DNA of 64,000 nt from Mytilus trossulus (GCF_036588685.1 NC_086373.1:91574001-91638000); one strand, 5' to 3'. Counted from the stretch's first letter, positions 33,693 to 45,257 are shown. Notes: a model not told the origin generated them from the sequence alone. Numbers and translations are program-made.

Positions 33693-35341
33693 GTGGATTC
33701 AAAACAATATTTGAAGATTTTTTTTTGTGTGGTAGACAACAACGCCGAACGGATTCTGGCCGAGCGCAATGACTGATATCAATAGCTCAGAAATCAGATC
33801 TAAAAGGTATTATAGAAAGTCGATGAATTTACATTGAACGATATTTTATCATATTTCCATTGATAATATTTCATTCTGTTACGCCATAGGCTTATTGAAT
33901 ATTTTCTACTTGTTTACCATATATATTCATCAACTTATTTACTTTATAGTTTGAAGAACCGTATATGGGTAGCGTGGGATTTCTATCATTCATTAACAAA
34001 AACAGATCGATTCTTTAATCAGGCATCGACAAGACACAAAATTGATAAAATGATCAACTGATCTTTTAACCAATTCATTAATGATTAATTTACTCTTTCA
34101 GAATATTAATTCAATGCCATGATTCCATGACGACTGTACCGACTTACACGACATTTGTTTCTGCATGACTGGAGATGCGTGAAAGAAATGTTAGGCCGAT
34201 CATTCACCTTGGAATCAAGTTGTTACAAGGAATGGCAAGGTCATTTCCAAGTACTTACTAATAAAACGTTAGCAGAAACCCGAACTACTTTTTTGAAATG
34301 ATGTTAGTATTACAGTATTATAGACATCTTGTAGGCGAGGCTTTTAAAAGGAGTTTTCAAACCTATTTTTTGTGACATACCAAACCGGAAACTGTTCAGA
34401 GTAACGTTTCTAACAGACCATGCAGGATTGTGTGGCTGCAACTGTTTGCATTATTGACGATATGATTGTTGCAATCAGGATGGAGAGATTGATGCAATAT
34501 TATAGTTTAAAACGCCCTCTTGCATATCAAATAAAGGAAATATGGTACGAATGACAGCGAAACAACGAAAGGATGCAGATACCAAAAGCCAAAGATGCAA
34601 ACACATATAGACCACTGTACAATAGCATTTACAATGAGCGAGATCCATAACTACTAGTAACTTAAAAATGCTTTAAAATTCGGCTTCTTAAAAAGATAAA
34701 CCAGTAGAAAAGTCTGTTTAAAGGTTTTGTAAGCTTTTGAGGTGAATACTGACATTTTTGTGCTTTGTAAAGATTATTACCATAAAAGATTCGATGTGAA
34801 TTACCTGAACGTATAAGATGTCTGCATGTTGAGTTATATTTACAAATTATTTCCTTATACCGATGATAAAATTTAGTAAATGTTTTGACTAGTTTGCGAT
34901 ATCGAAAACCCTGGTGTAATAACTTTAAAGTAATAAATAAATTTCTCTCGCTTTAATCTAATACGTTGTTACATACACGAGCGAATCGTACAAGTTGAGA
35001 TATATATATAAACACCATAAGATGGGAAAGAGGGAACTAGTTCGTCTGTTGATTCTAAGTCTGTTAAAGTATTACTATTGTATAACATGCATAACTTGTT
35101 CGTCTGTTGATTGTCAGACTGTTAGTGTATTACTATTGTATAAGCTGGAAATACAATAATCTTGTATAAGTTGTGGGACTAATGTTTAATTACTATCCAG
35201 TGCTCTAGATCCAGTGAATATATTATAATCTTTTTGTTGGATTTTAAACATTCTTCTAGAGTCAAACAAAGTGGGACATACCGAGAATGATATGTTTCAA
35301 GTACAGCAGTCTTAATTTCTCCTCATATACGCAATTGTGCA

Positions 35342-35932
35342 TGTAAAGGCCAATTTCTTGTTTTGAATCGAACAAATTTCGTTTTGCAAATTTATTGTTT
35401 TTGATGAAACTAACCTAGGTACTTTGGTTACTTTCCCCATCATATTTTTCCCTGAAAATTGAGAAACGTGTCACGACAATTTTGAACCCTTTAATTTTGA
35501 ATTATATAGAAATATCAGAGTCAACAAATAAGGTATGTTGATTTTTACATTTATTCTATGCATTTTGTGATAATATGAAAGTAAATTTAGCTATTTCTAT
35601 GCCGTTAATGTGAACTTGAGACAATGATAAATATCGCCAATCTGATAATTGTTTATTTTCGAAAATACGAACTTTATTCATTGCTTGTGTAAATCCTAGA
35701 TGTTACAATGACTGTTTACTATATTTTCACACCTATGTTTATATTTTTGTGAATGTTTTGAACATTGTTTTTGGTACAAAATCTTATGATGATTGCATTT
35801 TCTTTGTAGTCAATCTCATCTTACTGTTTATACTTTGGATCCAGTCACTTCACTGTAACTTGGAATATTTTGGAATAAACTTGAGGTGTGAATTGTGTTA
35901 TATTCATTTACGACTGATATTAGTGGGAAATA
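35342..35932 (+). repeat. 5' LTR of BEL element 1 (TG...TA)
   Basis: Direct repeat of 42148-42738; AATAAA at 35874-35879. Confidence 0.95.
35533..35809 (+). other. Predicted spliceosomal intron inside the LTR (copy at 42339-42615)
   Basis: Donor AAG|GTATGT, acceptor TTTTCTTTGTAG|TCAAT; AT-rich 277 bp. Confidence 0.65.
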
Positions 35933-35935
35933 TTC

Positions 35936-35948
35936 ATTGACTTATTTG
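35936..35948 (+). promoter_or_regulatory. Non-tRNA primer-binding-site candidate (complementary to the spliced LTR junction)
   Basis: ATTGACTTATTTG is the exact reverse complement of CAAATAAG|TCAAT (35525-35532 joined to 35810-35814); no TGG/tRNA match after the LTR. Confidence 0.6.
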
Positions 35949-35954
35949 ACGAAT

Positions 35955-38900
35955 ATGAGCACGTCACAGAAGGAAGAACCCAGTCTATTAATAGAATTTG
36001 AAAGTGTGGACACAGATAAGGTTGGCAGCAAAATAGATCAAAATGTAATTTTGAAAAGTGTGGACACAGAGTTAGGAGATTTTGTACAAACAGAATCAAA
36101 TATGGATAAGAACTTTGAAACAAATAAAACGGATGAACAGGAAGCACAGAAGACATCAGAGGCGACAGGCGGAGCTAGGCCAAGAAAGTATACCGATAAA
36201 GGTAAAGAATTTAGTGAAGAACAAATAACCAAATCCTATGATGGATTAAAAAGATTAAGTGAAAAAATAATAAGACTGATTTCTGATAACGAAACATTCG
36301 AGACAATAAGATTGCGCTATGGAAATTGGATGCAGGAATATGAACAATTTCATATCCAACATAGAATTCATTTTGATAAACTTAATGCCCTTGAGCAGGA
36401 AGATTATATGAAAATTCATACTACAAGAGATACTTTTCTAATGAACAGTCAATTCAAGATTCAAGAATATCTCAATGCAAATCCAGTGAAAGTGCAGGCA
36501 AGTGTTCATGGGAGATCAGTAAGAAGCGCGGGTAGCTCGTCCGTATCTTCAAAACGACTTGAAGTCGAGGAAAAAAGGATTGAGCTTGAGGCAAAACGAC
36601 AAGCAATGAAACGTAAGCGAGAACTTGAAATGGCAAAAGTGGCATTACAGTTAGATGAAGATGAACTGCAGATGCAAACTGAAATAGCTGTAGCTGATGC
36701 AAAAGCTAAGATATACGACAAGTTTGAAAAGGGTGAAATTGACCATGTTGAAACTCCGAAAGTAAAACTTGAAAATGTTGAATTGAAATCAAAACCTTTG
36801 CAAAGTACAGTACAGCCAGCTATCGAAACAGCAATTTTAGATCCGATGGCAAAAATATTTCAACCAGTTAAAACGAAATCAGACATTTTAAAGGAAACAA
36901 GTAAGTTAGATTTCGTTAATCTACCGTCCGTCAACATGATCAAAAACACTTCTAAACTTCCGAAACAAAATGTTCATGAATCATACGGACCAACTCAAAG
37001 TGACGATATAACATCTGCGCCAATTCAAAATTCGGCTATAAATACTAACAGTAGTGTAGAAACAGCCTTTCAAAGTATGGTGCAGCATTTGAGAAAACCG
37101 ACACCGGAAATAAGGAAATTTAGCGGAAATCCATTGGAATATAGGAAGTTTTTAAGACAATTTGAATCAAAGGTTGTTTTGAACTGTGAACAAGATGATG
37201 AGAAGATGAATTACCTCGAGCAGCTGACATTTGGAGAAGCACATAAGGTAGTATCTAGTTACAGTCACCTGCCAGGCGATAGAGCATATAAGGCATCAAT
37301 GCGTCATCTTGAAGAGCGATATGGTGATACAGACGTGATGGCCTCAGCCTTTATTAAAAAAGCTTTGGATTGGCCTAATATTAAATCAGGAGATATTCAA
37401 TCCTTGGACGAATTTGCATTGTTTTTGGTTGAATGTCAGTATGGCACGGAGAGTATGGAAGCCGGAAGTGTTTTAGAGTATTCTGAAAATATCAAACGTC
37501 TGATGTCAAAATTGCCCTTCCATATGCATGATCGCTGGAGAAATGTTGTTTTTCGTGTAAAGGATTCACATAGAACAGTTAAGTTTAATGACTTTGTGAA
37601 CTTTGTAAAAGCAGAAGCCAAGAAAGCTACAGATCCGACATATGGCAACATTGCCATGAATTATTCAAATTCTAGAAATACGAATCAACAGCGACAACAT
37701 GGACAAAAGGTTTCAAATGTATGTGATGTGGCAAAAAGGGCACCTAGTACTGAGATGCGCTGTTCCTATTGTGAAGGTACACATGCTTTAGACAAATGTA
37801 AACGACTTACAGCTCGTCCACGTGAAGACCGAATCGCTTACTTGAAATCTAAGGGATATTGTTTTGGTTGTCTTAAGAAAGGCCACATGAGTAATAAATG
37901 CAATAGGAGACTCAAATGCTCAATATGTGCGCGACTTCATCCAACTATACTTCATATTGACAATCAAATTAACAAACAATCATCGTCACAGCAAGAGCCA
38001 TCTGTTAAAAAGGATGATCCTCAAATACCCACAAATCATGAAGGCACACAGCCAGTTGTAGTTAGCTCCATTAGTAGTGATAAAGGGGCTGGTGATGTGA
38101 ATTGTGCTATGGCAATTATCCCTGTGCGAGTTAAATTGAACAATAGATCCCAGAGTGTCGAGACTTATGCTTTCTTCGACTCAGGCAGTAGCATAACATT
38201 TTGTAGCCAGAAGTTAATGCGTCAACTTGGAGCTAATGGAAAGAAAACTCAGATAACTATAAGTACAATGGGAAACACACAAACTATTAATACATGTGCA
38301 ATTAATGGCCTTCAAGTGTCTAGTCTGTCAATGGAACACATGGTGGATTTGCCTAAAGTATATACTAAGGAAAACCTGCCCGTATCAAAGGAACATATTC
38401 CTACTCAAAGAGAAATCAAGAAATGGACTCATTTGGAATCAGTGGATATCCCAGAGATTGATGCGGATATAGGAATTATGATAGGTAACAACGTACCTGA
38501 TGCTTATACACCGTTTAACGTATGCACGGGACCGAGCGGCTCCCCACACGCCACAAAAACGAGACTTGGGTGGATATTATGGAACGTTATAAGAGACAGT
38601 TCAAGCTTTGAAGTGAATAGAGTTCATATGCAAAATGAAGGATGTGATGAAACACAGTTGAATTTATTAATGCAGAGCATTAACTTAGACTTTCCAGAAC
38701 GAATGAACGAAGACAAAAGAGAGAATTCTATTGATGATAAAATATTCATGCAGCAAGTTGAGAGCTCTATACATTTAGAAAATCAGCACTACTGCATAGC
38801 ACTTCCGTTTCGAGACCAGCATGTTGTTTTTCCGAATAATTCAGTACAAGGCATAAAAAGGCTAAACGGACTCCGACACAAGTTTGCCAAGAACGATAAC

Positions 38901-41900
38901 TTCAAACAACAATACTGTGATTTCATGTCAAAGATAATTGAGAAAGGCTATGCAGAACCTGTACCTACTGAAGATGTAGATAGAAATGATGGCAAAGTTT
39001 GGTACCTACCGCACCATGGAGTTTACCATGCGAAAAAACAGGACAAAATACGAGTTGTTTTCGATTGTTCTGTAAAATACATGGGCATTTCTTTGAATAG
39101 TCAGCTATTACAGGGTCCAAACCTTGCTAACAATCTTTTAGGCGTACTTATCAGATTCCGACAGGATAAAATAGCAGTCTTAGGTGACATCGAATCAATG
39201 TTTTACCAGGTGAAGGTTCCAGTTGAGGACAGAGACTTCTTACGTTTCTACTGGTGGGAAAACGGAAATGTTGATACTGAACCTAAAGAATACAGGATGA
39301 CAGTACATTTGTTTGGGGCTACTTCTTCACCGAGTTGTAGTAATTACGCTCTACAAAATACGGCAAAAGAAAACAAGGATAGATTTGATTCTTTGGTGAT
39401 TGATACACTGACAAAGAACATGTATGTAGATGATTGTTTGAGTTCTACCGATACAGATGAAAGTGCTATATCGCTTATTAAGAATGTAACTGAATTGTGC
39501 AAAGAAGGCGGATTCAATATGACTAAATGGACAAGTAACAGTCAAAATGTTGTGCAATCCATACCTGAAAAGGATTGCGCAAGAAATATAGAGGAATGGA
39601 ATTGTGGAGATGATAGTCTCACCGACCGTGCACTTGGAGTGTATTGGTATATAAAAGATGACAAACTTGGATTTCACATAAACATTAAAGAAAAACCGTC
39701 AACAAGACGCGGAATTCTCAGCATAGTCAGCTCAATCTATGACCCTATTGGTATCGTTTCTCCGTTTGTATTGACAGCCAAATCTATACTACAAGGATTG
39801 TGTAAGAAAGAAATTGGATGGGATGAAGAAATTCCCAACAGCGAACTTTCGTCATGGAACAAATGGCTCAGTCAGCTTAAGGGATTGGAAAACATTAAAA
39901 TAGATAGATGCTACAAGCCTCAACACTTCAAGTCTATTGTTTCATGCCAACTACATTGTTTTGCAGACGCAAGTGACAAAGGTTATGGTTGTGTATTTTA
40001 CATACGGTTAGTCGATGAAGAAGGTAGTATACAGTGTTCCTTTTTGTTAGGAAAATCGAGAGTAGCACCGCTTAAATCGATGACTATTCCGAGGATGGAA
40101 CTGACAGCTGCTACTAGTGCCGTTAGGCTTGGAAACATGATTATAAGAGAGATAGAATACTCATTTGATGACATTTATTACTATTCAGACAGTATGTCAG
40201 TACTTCGATATATAGCAAACTCAAAGACACGTTTTCACACTTTTGTAGCCAATCGTTTGGCTGTTATTCATGAATCAACTAAAGTTAATCAATGGCACTA
40301 CGTAGGCACAAAAGAGAACCCGGCTGATTTAGCTTCGAGGGGAGCGACTATTGAACAATTTAACAGAAATCCACAATGGCTTCGTGGGCCAGATTTCTTA
40401 TGGGATAAAGACATTAAATTCCCACAGTGTACCGAGGACACTAGTTTTATCGGCAATGATCCAGAAGTTAAGAAACCAGTGGCTGTTTGCACTGTAGAAT
40501 CATTTGAAGGAATGGAACGTCTTATTTCTTACTTTTCGAATTGGGAACGCTTAGTCACCATAGCTGCACGGTTCGTACTTGCAGCCAATCACTTTAGAAG
40601 TGTTAAAGACAGTATTGAAATCGATGGAAACGGAAAAACGACTATGAAGATGTCTGATACGCTTACGACAAGTATAGTTGAGTGTGCAGAGAGGTCCTTG
40701 ATTAGTTATGTGCAACATAAACACTTTAATGATGATATACAGACTCTTGAAAAGAAATGTCCTCTCAAAATTTCTTCTAAACTGAGCAATCTGGATCCAT
40801 TTGTCGACAAAGATGGATTGCTTAGAGTTGGAGGACGATTGGAGCGATCGGATATTTCGTACGAATCAAAACACCCTATCGTCTTGCCTAAGGACTCACC
40901 GATATCAAGACTTATTATTGAGAACATTCATCGTTCAATTGGACATTTAGGAAAGAATTCAATCTTAGCCGTTCTTAGACAAAAATATTGGATTTTAGGA
41001 GCCAATTCTATTATTAAAGGCTTAGTGTCTAGATGCGTCAGATGTAAGAAATATCAAGGAACATGCGCAAAACAGAAAATGGCAAATCTTCCGAAAGAAA
41101 GACTTCAGGCTGATGATCCGCCTTTCACAAGAATTGGAATAGATTTCTTTGGACCCTTTGAGGTAAAGCAAGGAAGGAGTGTAGTTAAAAGATATGGTGT
41201 GATTTTCACATGCCTGACTATTAGGGCAATACACCTCGAATTGGCATATTCATTAGACACTGACTCTTGCATAAATGCTATAAGGAGATTTATTTCGAGA
41301 AGAGGAGTGCCAGTCTTTATAAGGACAGACAATGGAACAAACTTTGTTGGTTCAGAAAGGGAACTAGGAGAAGAAATAAAAAGATGGAACTTAAATCCAA
41401 TACAGGAATTCATGATTCAGAAACGCATTCAGTGGGAATTTAATCCGCCGTCTGCATCACACTTTGGAGGAGTATGGGAACGCCTTATTAGATCAGTGCG
41501 TAAGGTATTCTATTCAGTCATGCACGAACAGAACATTCGACTAACTGATGAAGGACTTATGACTCTATTCTGTGAAGTAGAAAGTATTCTTAATGGACGT
41601 CCGATCACAGAAGCGTCAGATAGTATCACAGACTTAAATGTATTGACTCCGAATCACTTGATACTTCAACGTGCGGGTGAAAGCTTTCCACCTGGTGTGT
41701 TCTCTAAGACAGACAGCTACGTCAGAAGGCGATGGAGACAAATCCAGTATCTCGCTGATTTATTTTGGACTAGATGGCGAAAGGAATACTTACCTCTATT
41801 GCAGCGCAGAACAAAATGGACAAAACCGACAAGAAATATGCAAGTAGGAGACATAGTTCTCATTTCCGACAATGCACCGAGAAATTCGTGGAACATGGCT

Positions 41901-42020
41901 CGTGTGATTGAACTAATCAAAGACAAGGACAATATTGTTAGAATTGTCAAAGTGAAAACCGCAAATTCTGTGTTAACGAGACCAATTGCGAAACTGTGTC
42001 TTCTTGTAGAAAGTGACTAA
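35955..42020 (+). CDS. BEL/Pao Gag-Pol polyprotein (~2021 aa from first ATG after the LTR)
   Basis: Capsid-like region (IRKFSGNPLEY), three Cys/His knuckles (CSYCEGTHALDKC, CFGCLKKGHMSNKC, CSICARLHPTILH), protease FFDSGS, RT YVDD, Pao RNase H (CFADASDKGYG, IPRMEL), integrase HHCC plus DFFGP/DNGTNF/WERLIR; order PR-RT-RH-IN; no stops. Confidence 0.97.
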   Translation: MSTSQKEEPSLLIEFESVDTDKVGSKIDQNVILKSVDTELGDFVQTESNMDKNFETNKTDEQEAQKTSEATGGARPRKYTDKGKEFSEEQITKSYDGLKRLSEKIIRLISDNETFETIRLRYGNWMQEYEQFHIQHRIHFDKLNALEQEDYMKIHTTRDTFLMNSQFKIQEYLNANPVKVQASVHGRSVRSAGSSSVSSKRLEVEEKRIELEAKRQAMKRKRELEMAKVALQLDEDELQMQTEIAVADAKAKIYDKFEKGEIDHVETPKVKLENVELKSKPLQSTVQPAIETAILDPMAKIFQPVKTKSDILKETSKLDFVNLPSVNMIKNTSKLPKQNVHESYGPTQSDDITSAPIQNSAINTNSSVETAFQSMVQHLRKPTPEIRKFSGNPLEYRKFLRQFESKVVLNCEQDDEKMNYLEQLTFGEAHKVVSSYSHLPGDRAYKASMRHLEERYGDTDVMASAFIKKALDWPNIKSGDIQSLDEFALFLVECQYGTESMEAGSVLEYSENIKRLMSKLPFHMHDRWRNVVFRVKDSHRTVKFNDFVNFVKAEAKKATDPTYGNIAMNYSNSRNTNQQRQHGQKVSNVCDVAKRAPSTEMRCSYCEGTHALDKCKRLTARPREDRIAYLKSKGYCFGCLKKGHMSNKCNRRLKCSICARLHPTILHIDNQINKQSSSQQEPSVKKDDPQIPTNHEGTQPVVVSSISSDKGAGDVNCAMAIIPVRVKLNNRSQSVETYAFFDSGSSITFCSQKLMRQLGANGKKTQITISTMGNTQTINTCAINGLQVSSLSMEHMVDLPKVYTKENLPVSKEHIPTQREIKKWTHLESVDIPEIDADIGIMIGNNVPDAYTPFNVCTGPSGSPHATKTRLGWILWNVIRDSSSFEVNRVHMQNEGCDETQLNLLMQSINLDFPERMNEDKRENSIDDKIFMQQVESSIHLENQHYCIALPFRDQHVVFPNNSVQGIKRLNGLRHKFAKNDNFKQQYCDFMSKIIEKGYAEPVPTEDVDRNDGKVWYLPHHGVYHAKKQDKIRVVFDCSVKYMGISLNSQLLQGPNLANNLLGVLIRFRQDKIAVLGDIESMFYQVKVPVEDRDFLRFYWWENGNVDTEPKEYRMTVHLFGATSSPSCSNYALQNTAKENKDRFDSLVIDTLTKNMYVDDCLSSTDTDESAISLIKNVTELCKEGGFNMTKWTSNSQNVVQSIPEKDCARNIEEWNCGDDSLTDRALGVYWYIKDDKLGFHINIKEKPSTRRGILSIVSSIYDPIGIVSPFVLTAKSILQGLCKKEIGWDEEIPNSELSSWNKWLSQLKGLENIKIDRCYKPQHFKSIVSCQLHCFADASDKGYGCVFYIRLVDEEGSIQCSFLLGKSRVAPLKSMTIPRMELTAATSAVRLGNMIIREIEYSFDDIYYYSDSMSVLRYIANSKTRFHTFVANRLAVIHESTKVNQWHYVGTKENPADLASRGATIEQFNRNPQWLRGPDFLWDKDIKFPQCTEDTSFIGNDPEVKKPVAVCTVESFEGMERLISYFSNWERLVTIAARFVLAANHFRSVKDSIEIDGNGKTTMKMSDTLTTSIVECAERSLISYVQHKHFNDDIQTLEKKCPLKISSKLSNLDPFVDKDGLLRVGGRLERSDISYESKHPIVLPKDSPISRLIIENIHRSIGHLGKNSILAVLRQKYWILGANSIIKGLVSRCVRCKKYQGTCAKQKMANLPKERLQADDPPFTRIGIDFFGPFEVKQGRSVVKRYGVIFTCLTIRAIHLELAYSLDTDSCINAIRRFISRRGVPVFIRTDNGTNFVGSERELGEEIKRWNLNPIQEFMIQKRIQWEFNPPSASHFGGVWERLIRSVRKVFYSVMHEQNIRLTDEGLMTLFCEVESILNGRPITEASDSITDLNVLTPNHLILQRAGESFPPGVFSKTDSYVRRRWRQIQYLADLFWTRWRKEYLPLLQRRTKWTKPTRNMQVGDIVLISDNAPRNSWNMARVIELIKDKDNIVRIVKVKTANSVLTRPIAKLCLLVESD

Positions 42021-42147
42021 AAACCCACAGCTGCCACCAAACTCGTGTTGATATGATAAACATTTATTGAACATTATGATATAATTGTCCTTTTGATTTA
42101 TTTTTGATAATTGCGTTCTAGTTAAGAACCCAATTTAGGGGCTGGTA

Positions 42148-42738
42148 TGTAAAGGCCAATTTCTTGTTTTGAATCGAACAAATTTCGTTTTGCAAATTTA
42201 TTGTTTTTGATGAAACTAACCTAGGTACTTTGGTTACTTTCCCCATCATATTTTTCCCTGAAAATTGAGAAACGTGTCACGACAATTTTGAACCCTTTAA
42301 TTTTGAATTATATAGAAATATCAGAGTCAACAAATAAGGTATGTTGATTTTTACATTTATTCTATGCATTTTGTGATAATATGAAAGTAAATTTAGCTAT
42401 TTCTATGCCGTTAATGTGAACTTGAGACAATGATAAATATCGCCAATCTGATAATTGTTTATTTTCGAAAATACGAACTGTATTCATTGCTTGTGTAAAT
42501 CCTAGATGTTACAATGACTGTTTACTATATTTTCACACCTATGTTTATATTTTTGTGAATGTTTTGAACATTGTTTTTGGTACAAAATCTTATGATGATT
42601 GCATTTTCTTTGTAGTCAATCTCATCTTACTGTTTATACTTTGGATCCAGTCACTTCACTGTAACTTGGAATATTTTGGAATAAACTTGAGGTGTGAATT
42701 GTGTTATATTCATTTACGACTGATATTAGTGGGAAATA
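42148..42738 (+). repeat. 3' LTR of BEL element 1
   Basis: Direct repeat of 35342-35932, followed by TSD GTGCA. Confidence 0.95.
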
Positions 42739-42755
42739 GTGCACTCATCATAATT

Positions 42756-45257
42756 GATGCTGACTAGAAAATTATGTACTGAGCCCTGGAATGACAGTCT
42801 TAGACACAAAGTATTATATCATAATAAGGAACTGAATAAACTTATAAGGAAAAAATATAGACAATTTAGACATAAAATGATAAACCAGATTATAGATTCA
42901 AATAATAGCTGTCCAAATGATTTTTGGAAAACAATTAAGAAACTAAAAAAGGAGAACTTCAAGGATCCTAGTTCTAACATACAACCTAAAGAATGGTTTA
43001 AATATTTTAATAAGTTAATGAATATTGATTATGATAAAAATGTATGTAATGACAAGAAAGAGTATACTACTTTTAAAGATTGTAACACATGTACTAAGAT
43101 GTTAAACAGTTCTATTACAACTGAGGAGGTGGTTATTGCAGCAAAATCTTTAAAGAATAATAAAGCAAGTGGTTCAGATTGTATTACGAATGAAATGTTA
43201 CAAATATCTTGTTATATGAATATTGATGTGTATGTAAAATTGTTTAATCTTATTCTTAAGTCTGGTATCTACCCAACTTTATGGAGAAAATTTTTTATTA
43301 AGCCCATTTTCAAGGGTGGGTGTTTTAATGATCCATCTAATTATCGAGGTATAGCCCTTTCAAGTTGTTTGGGAAAATTTTTTCTAAAAGTTTTACATAA
43401 CAGATTAGAAAAGTATCTTGAAGGAAATGAACTTATATGTCGTGAGCAAATTGGATTCAGAAAGGGAAGTCGAACAAGTGATCATGTTTTAACTCTAAAA
43501 ACTATAATTGATAAAGCATTTAAATCATCAAAAAAGATATATGCCTGTTTCATTGATTTCAGGAAGGCATTTGATACTATTAATAGAGATGCCCTCTTTT
43601 ACAAATTGTCTTATTACAACATAGATGGTCCCTTTTTTAGTATAATGAAAGATATGTATAAAGAGGTTTTGTACTCGGTAAAGATCTCGGAAGGTATCAC
43701 TGATTTTTTTAATTCCTCAGTTGGGGTAAAACAAGGGTGTATTTTAAGCCCTACATTATTTTCTTTATATATTAATGATTTACCATCTATTTTTGACTCA
43801 ACATGTGAACCACCCAAGTTAAATGATAATGATATATCATGTCTGTTATATGCTGATGATTTAGTTCTTATTTCTGAATCGGCTAATGGCTTACAAAAAT
43901 GCCTTGACAAGCTTAGTTTATATTGCACTAGTTGGGATTTAACAGTAAATCTTGACAAAACCAAAGTTATGATTTTTAACAAATCAGGTAAAAAACTTAT
44001 AAAAGACAAGTTTGTTTTTAGTGATAATATTTTGGAACACTGTACAGAATATAAATATTTGGGTATACTGTTTAAACCATCTGGTAGTTTTACAGAGGCA
44101 GTGAGACTTCTTTGTAAAAAAGCCTCAAAAGCTATATTTTGTATTAGAAAACTGTTATTTTCTGAAAATATCAATGTATTACCTCACTTAAAGCTTTTTG
44201 ATGCTTGTGTTAAACCTATACTTCTTTATTGTAGCGAAGTTTGGTCTCTGTATATGATAAAAGATATTACAAATCTAGAGTCAAAATATTGGTCATTGGC
44301 TACCATCAAAGTCCAAATTAAATTTGCAAAAACTTTAATTGGAGTAAATAAATCAGCTGTCAATTTAGCAGTACTAGCTGAACTTGGTATGTATCCAGTT
44401 TTTATAGAAGCTTTAAAACTGTCAATTGGCTTCTGGTTGCATGTCATAAAATCTGATAACAATTGTTTACTAAAAGATGTATATTGTTCCAACCTGCAAT
44501 TAACCAATGGATTTGCTAAAAAGATTGAACAGTTACTTGCTACATTAAATTTTTCTCATGTTTGGAAAAATCATGATACTATTTCAAAAACGCGTTTATT
44601 ATATGCAATTCATACCAAACTTAATGATAGATATCTTAATTATTGGAAAGAAAATATATTTTGTGATAATAAATCAGTACATGGTAATAAGCTGAGAACA
44701 TATAGACAGCTTAAAGAAAATTATAAATTGGAAACCTATTTATTGTTAAATATGGACAGAAAAGTAATAGGGAATTTTGCTAAAATTCGTATTAGTAATA
44801 GTGTTCTTAGAATTGAACAAGGGCGTCACACTAAACCCCCTGTAGAAGAAAGAATTTGTCCTTTGTGTCTCTTAGAAGTAGAAGATGAATTTCATTTCAC
44901 TTTAAAATGTACAAAATTAAATATAATTAGAGACCAACTGTTTTCCAGAATTAGGGAAATAGTTCCCTCTTTTTTCAATATGACTAATGAAGCAAGATTT
45001 AAATTTTTGTATACGTGTGTTGAGACTGATATAATTAGAATAATTGTTAAATTTATAAGCGACATGTACATTTCTAGAAATGCTCTATTAAGCACTAAAT
45101 AACTTTGTGGTACCACCTCCTCATATAATGTTTATAAATTTGGTATGATATATATATATGTTTGTATGTTTGTGTATAACAAATTTGTATTGTCTTGGTA
45201 TCAATCCTGTAATTTTGGATTTTAAACCAATAAAAATTACTTACTTACTTACTTACT
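42756..45257 (+). mobile_element. 5'-truncated non-LTR retrotransposon (RTE-X-like LINE)
   Basis: RT ORF open up to the 5' junction; AATAAA then a (TTAC)n tail at ~45237-45257; 8-bp TSD TCATAATT (42748-42755, 45258-45265). Clade assignment is from motif recall, not a search. Confidence 0.88.
42757..45102 (+). pseudogene. LINE ORF2 fragment: reverse transcriptase plus C-terminal CCHC, endonuclease missing
   Basis: Motifs NYRGIAL, QIGFRKG, FIDFRKAFD, GVKQGCILSPTLF, YADD, YKYLG, and C-terminal RIEQGRH...RICPLC..VEDEFHFTLKC; no internal stops. Confidence 0.9.

Follow-up and report, generated by a model that had tools for sequence, protein, structure and literature searches.

We show here that a young BEL/Pao retrotransposon carries, at the position of the primer-binding site, the exact complement of a sequence that exists only after an intron inside its LTR has been removed. 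The element most likely starts its own reverse transcription with this spliced leader, although the nuclease that cuts the primer, the source of the primer in the 5' leader and the way in which the intron is retained are inferred at best. The element lies on the plus strand of a 64,000-nt stretch of Mytilus trossulus DNA (GCF_036588685.1 NC_086373.1:91574001-91638000), hereafter called the window. The donor site, CAAATAAG at 35525-35532, is followed by GTATGT, and the acceptor site, TTTTCTTTGTAG, is followed by TCAAT at 35810-35814. Joining 35532 to 35810 creates a 13-mer, and its exact reverse complement, ATTGACTTATTTG, is located at 35936-35948, separated from the end of the 5' LTR at 35932 by the 3-nt spacer TTC (35933-35935). 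The unspliced RNA offers only separate matches of 8 nt and 7 nt. A first-pass annotation had described this arrangement and proposed that splicing of the LTR leader creates the primer. All of its coordinates are correct, and its interpretation is supported by the tests named for its refutation, as far as these could be run. Chance is an unlikely explanation. When all GT..AG pairs of the LTR were compared with 2000 random 30-mers of the window, a junction-spanning match of 13 nt or more occurred in 0.2% of them. Furthermore, ATTGACTTATTTG occurs only once in the window, and donor and acceptor are each the top-ranked site of the LTR according to an approximate weight matrix.

The element spans 35342-42738. 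The 5' LTR (35342-35932, TGT...ATA) and the 3' LTR (42148-42738) are each 591 nt long, differ only at 35674 and are flanked by the target-site duplication GTGCA at 35337-35341 and 42739-42743. A gag-pol ORF of 2021 aa starts with an ATG at 35955 and ends with a stop codon at 42018-42020. Along this ORF, Pfam hits are found in the order DUF1759 (PF03564, aa 389-501, E 1.8e-8), Asp_protease_2 (aa 725-796), RVT_1 (aa 1066-1189), Peptidase_A17 (aa 1250-1413, E 1.4e-49), Integrase_H2C2 (aa 1652-1701) and DUF5641 at the C-terminus, hence the order PR-RT-IN of BEL/Pao elements. A polypurine-tract region, TTTAGGGGCTGGTA at 42134-42147 with the PPT-like AGGGGCTGG, abuts the 3' LTR. There is no TGG in 35933-35960, thus a TGG-type primer-binding site is absent. 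Within the 5' LTR, U3 is inferred to extend from 35342 to 35516 and contains TATATAG at 35503-35509 and an Inr-like TCAGAG at 35515-35520. It is followed by a mini-exon of about 16 nt (exon 1, 35517-35532), the 277-nt intron (35533-35809), the first 5 nt of exon 2 (35810-35814), and the rest of R plus U5 (35815-35932) with AATAAA at 35874-35879. The 3' LTR contains its own copy of the intron (42339-42615) and AATAAA at 42680.

The intron is supported by public sequencing runs. Logan contigs of four runs were aligned to 35242-41241, and the joint 35532|35810 (GT..AG, 277 nt skipped) appears in one contig each of the runs X1, X7 and X9, which come from three organism codes and three studies, while the fourth run, X2, shows only the unspliced form. 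The RNA label of these runs is a guess. However, in X1, where 11 of 15 contigs are at least 99% identical to the window, the joined contig has a depth of 7, and in X1 and X7 the 3' half of the intron has no contig cover, while exon 2-U5-gag is covered. The window's genome (1.3 Gb; the closest protein relative is from Mytilus edulis at 84% identity) holds at least 8 full copies of the element and many solo LTRs. A search with a 22-nt joined junction gave no match within 2 mismatches that belongs to this element, and all aligned LTR copies, down to 82% identity, keep GT, AG and TCAAT, with the splice dinucleotides invariant in 10 LTR copies. DNA of this species could therefore not give the X1 pattern, and the joined form in X1 is best read as RNA. 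Even if some of these runs were DNA, a copy lacking exactly a GT..AG intron could only arise from spliced RNA. Contigs built from 31-mers cannot phase the junction with U5-PBS-gag, hence splicing of the 5' leader itself is not shown. Some joined contigs carry U3 letters upstream of the inferred transcription start (X9 covers 35341-35530 joined to exon 2, and X1 has 28 nt before the joint), indicating that at least some spliced molecules are of the 3' LTR or read-through type. In X7, a 2.6-kb contig at depth 16, compared to 3-5 for the rest of the element, joins an intron-less LTR to gag up to 37891 and then goes back from 37896 to the LTR start (35341-37896), potentially indicating an abundant internally deleted derivative with intron-less LTRs in that organism, or an assembly cycle.

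Two aberrant genomic copies appear to record the priming event, although each is a single occurrence. The copy L002 (contig C14 of the window's genome) is 99% identical to the window copy and has its own target-site duplication, TGCTG. After the 13-mer it reads TTGACTCTGA where other copies read ACGAATATGA, and together with the 13-mer this makes the 23-nt complement of TCAGAGTCAACAAATAAG|TCAAT. This is what is expected if plus-strand strong-stop DNA copied the whole primer RNA to its 5' end. It shows that the primer carries the element's own exon 1 and places the primer's 5' end at 35515-35518, upstream of the donor and inside the Inr-like motif. L002 has thereby lost the ATG at the position of 35955. 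Its 3' LTR (L008) carries an A-to-C change in exon 1 (CAACACATAAG) that also occurs in the old copy L020/L023, while the 5' LTR of L002 has CAAATAAG, which could reflect recurrent mutation or exchange between copies. The second copy, L024/L026 (contig C1, target-site duplication CTGTA), has an aberrant 3' LTR that equals 35480-35532 + 35810-35814 + the reverse complement of 35891-35935 + 35815-35932, with 1 mismatch in 221 nt. Thus, exon 1-TCAAT is followed directly by the first 45 nt of minus-strand DNA, namely GAA, the complement of the spacer, and then the complement of U5. The intron is exactly absent, and the sequence resumes at 35815, the base after the predicted cut. This breakpoint matches the strong-stop end just after 35814 that the first-pass annotation had predicted. 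The spacer and PBS letters occur only next to the 5' LTR, 6.8 kb away, and the joint therefore arose during reverse transcription and not by a local DNA rearrangement. We infer that a complete strong-stop DNA ending at the complement of 35815 jumped onto the 3' end of a second, nascent primer-cDNA chain and copied it back into the primer. The 5' LTR of this copy is truncated (L024:1335-1520, C1:33275155-33275340). Its U3 runs to the equivalent of 35503, followed by GACTTAT and ATATTTC and then the normal ATTGACTTATTTG, so that part of the primer site appears twice, an arrangement that we could not derive from a simple strand-transfer error.

Related BEL/Pao families of the same genome suggest that the design is not restricted to this element. 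Five further families with 41-52% pol identity have the complement of their predicted junction 0-2 nt after the LTR end, with the LTR ends confirmed by solo or 3' LTR hits that stop at the same base. The predicted junctions and post-LTR sites are AATCG|AGAAT and ATTCTCGATT in family L068, AGAG|TTCTTAC and GTAAGAACTCT in L069, GGC|TTTTTTAC and GTAAAAAAGCC in L071, AGT|CTTTTTAC and GTAAAAAGACT in L072, and TTCTAATTTG|TAAAT and ATTTAC(A)AAATTAGAA with one bulged base in the family named C2. L071 and L072 differ at three junction positions, and all three are compensated in the site. In a swap control, each of the six LTRs against its own post-LTR sequence scores 13, 10, 10, 11, 11 and 13, while all 30 swapped pairs score 9 or less. 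The contiguous alternatives in unspliced RNA are, in our reading, shorter in every family (7, 6, 6, 9, 8 and 8). An exact-match scan with a 200-nt target window had a background of 11-12 nt and is not evidence on its own. The donor used is the top-ranked GT in 6 of 6 LTRs, and the acceptors rank 1, 1, 4, 1, 2 and 1. The introns of the five sister families are, however, predictions only. Within the family of the window element, all copies from 82% to 100% identity share the same junction and site, and covariation is therefore uninformative. An old copy (L020/L022) has 2 mismatches, but its two loci share a 96% identical flank and represent a single decayed insertion that was later duplicated. 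On contig C12 this copy has a 940-nt insertion at the exon 1/intron boundary, flanked by the 4-nt repeat ATAA (L020:560-1501, C12:36126898-36127839), and in the duplicate on C11 (L022/L023) a 6.6-kb insert sits in the intron.

RNA folding is in line with a spliced primer. The 13-bp helix is part of the minimum-energy fold of the spliced leader, where it closes a 121-nt stem-loop over R-U5 with pair probabilities of 0.68-0.98, whereas the 8-nt and 7-nt pairings have a probability of 0 in the unspliced leader. The duplex energy is -13.4 kcal/mol compared to -5.2 kcal/mol for the 8-mer. Among the six families, four spliced leaders show the helix in the minimum-energy fold and two do not. Taken together, we favor the following model as probable. 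Transcription is inferred to start about 16 nt before the 5' splice site, and removal of the intron joins CAAATAAG to TCAAT. The junction pairs with the site downstream of the 5' LTR, and the RNA is cut at the end of the duplex after 35814, presumably by the element's RNase H. The resulting 5' fragment of about 21 nt is extended through TTC, U5 and R down to 35815, and this short strong-stop DNA transfers to the 3' R. If that copy is unspliced, the intron is re-copied into both LTRs. Plus-strand strong-stop synthesis copies the primer and so rewrites the primer-binding site in each cycle, which keeps junction and site complementary. The start site suggested by L002 is supported by a similar ATAT..CAGAG motif 13-16 nt before the donor in sister families, however TATATAG at 35503 would place a canonical start near the donor and not at 35517. 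If 3' copies are spliced, intron-less progeny are expected, yet none is seen among more than 20 LTR copies in this genome, and the model needs an extra assumption here. Weaker splicing of the 3' copy, which is not cap-proximal, selection of intron-bearing RNA for packaging, or a trans primer on an unspliced template are possible.

The last of these possibilities leads to an alternative that we regard as unlikely but cannot dismiss, in which the splice junction is still the primer, but is donated by the spliced 3' LTR region of a genomic RNA (U3-exon 1|exon 2-polyA) or by a separate spliced RNA in trans. The template leader would stay unspliced, strong-stop DNA would run through the 5' intron, and the intron would be kept automatically. 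The U3 letters in joined contigs, the absence of intron-less LTRs in this genome and the contiguity of U3-exon 1-TCAAT with the cDNA in L026 are in line with this view. In addition, TATATAG lies 29 nt before the donor, with similar motifs 22-27 nt before it in sister families, which hints at a start near the donor. In contrast, the L026 breakpoint at 35814/35815 needs a U5-bearing leader that ends at 35815, which fits a leader cut in cis. The primer copy in L002 stops at 35515-35518 as expected for run-off at a cap-proximal 5' end, X1 and X7 show no unspliced acceptor-side contig although gag is covered, and the cis helix is the minimum-energy fold.

Self-priming without a role for splicing is quite improbable. 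In this case the end of exon 1 would pair 8 nt with 35941-35948, either in unspliced RNA cut at 35532 or as the free exon-1 splicing intermediate, and indeed L002 and the first junction of L026 are equally produced by a primer that ends at G35532 and copies ATTGA from the template. However, the further 5-nt match begins exactly at the acceptor, with a chance of about 1 in 1000, the 8-mer duplex is weak, and the second breakpoint and exact intron loss in L026 are left unexplained. In four sister families exon 1 contributes only 3-5 nt, while exon 2 contributes 5-8 nt, hence an exon-1-only primer cannot be general. Priming by the unspliced acceptor region (AGTCAAT, 7 nt) is rejected, because read-through fossils would then carry intron letters, and they do not. 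It is also very doubtful that the complementarity serves only packaging, dimerisation or translation control of the spliced leader, with priming by an unidentified host RNA, although the stem-loop could have such roles. Both aberrant copies show DNA synthesis starting from, or copying, exon 1-TCAAT at this site, and no TGG-type site, no tRNA gene in the window and no Rfam match in 35300-36100 were found, although the host tRNA set was not screened. A mere chance match in AT-rich sequence is contradicted by the observed junction, the two aberrant copies and the swap control, even though junction matches of 11-12 nt are common when all GT..AG pairs and a 200-nt target window are allowed.

In function, the element is closest to the self-primed Tf1/Tf2 elements of Schizosaccharomyces pombe and the Tf1/Sushi group (PMC6317226). 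In Tf1, a stretch of the element's own 5' RNA folds back onto the site just downstream of the 5' LTR, a cut at the duplex end releases a short 5' fragment that primes minus-strand synthesis, and the site is renewed by copying the primer. The 11 complementary nt of Tf1 are, however, the first bases of the transcript and contiguous in the DNA, while here the stretch is split by the intron and begins about 8 nt from the inferred 5' end, with at least 7 further exon-1 bases located 5' of it in the primer recorded in L002. Furthermore, Tf1 belongs to the Ty3/gypsy chromoviruses and not to BEL/Pao. Self-priming has also been predicted from LTR/post-LTR complementarity for plant Tcn1 chromoviruses and TAR/Houba/Osr-1 Ty1/copia elements, where the complements are contiguous and no splicing is involved (PMC6317226). 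Retroviruses have a 5' splice site in the LTR or leader region, in deltaretroviruses and foamy viruses inside R, however their acceptor lies far downstream, the intron is not contained in the LTR, and priming uses tRNA. With canonical BEL/Pao elements such as Pao, BEL, Cer and Sinbad the element shares gene content and order, LTR ends, a 5-bp target-site duplication and a PPT next to the 3' LTR. This clade has no tRNA-type PBS. In full-text searches, which did not cover most subscription journals, we found no paper on BEL/Pao self-priming, on an intron inside an LTR or on a spliced primer.

Known ways to start reverse transcription in LTR retroelements are a tRNA 3' end, a tRNA half, or Tf1-type self-priming, and a primer written across an exon-exon junction would be a new solution and the first self-priming reported for BEL/Pao. 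It would directly couple the host spliceosome to retroelement replication, give a reason for an intron to persist inside an LTR, and predict that only cells that splice the leader can prime. It also explains why these elements are scored as lacking a PBS, so that LTR annotation tools would miss or misjudge them. It is tempting, though tentative, to speculate that splicing acts as an obligatory switch in the replication of a whole clade of bivalve BEL/Pao elements. Replication would then need two RNA states, a spliced primer donor and a template that keeps at least one intron copy. The LTR intron would be a selected, self-perpetuating part of the replication machinery, and the host spliceosome a required cofactor for priming in place of the host tRNA.

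Among the sister families, L072 has at least nine full-length 5' ends that are 97-100% identical (C13:14270355 and at least 8 other places), indicating a very recently active family with the same junction/site design, and the L068 family has at least 7 such copies. A tandem of two L069-like elements that share a middle LTR is located at C9:72514153-72528098. Similarity of its LTRs to L069 begins 2 nt before the predicted exon 2 start (q46, with exon 2 starting at q48), and it could represent an intron-less or intron-replaced LTR lineage. Degraded gag relatives on contigs C19, C9 and C10 had no clear LTR pair or ORF, and a search with the PPT pattern recovered only the C2 family, in which a similar motif precedes the 3' LTR, and one more locus (L067). 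In the window itself, an ORF of 782 aa with RVT_1 (E 1.9e-38) at 42754-45102 on the plus strand starts 16 nt after the 3' LTR. The BEL/Pao element therefore seems to have inserted into another retroelement.
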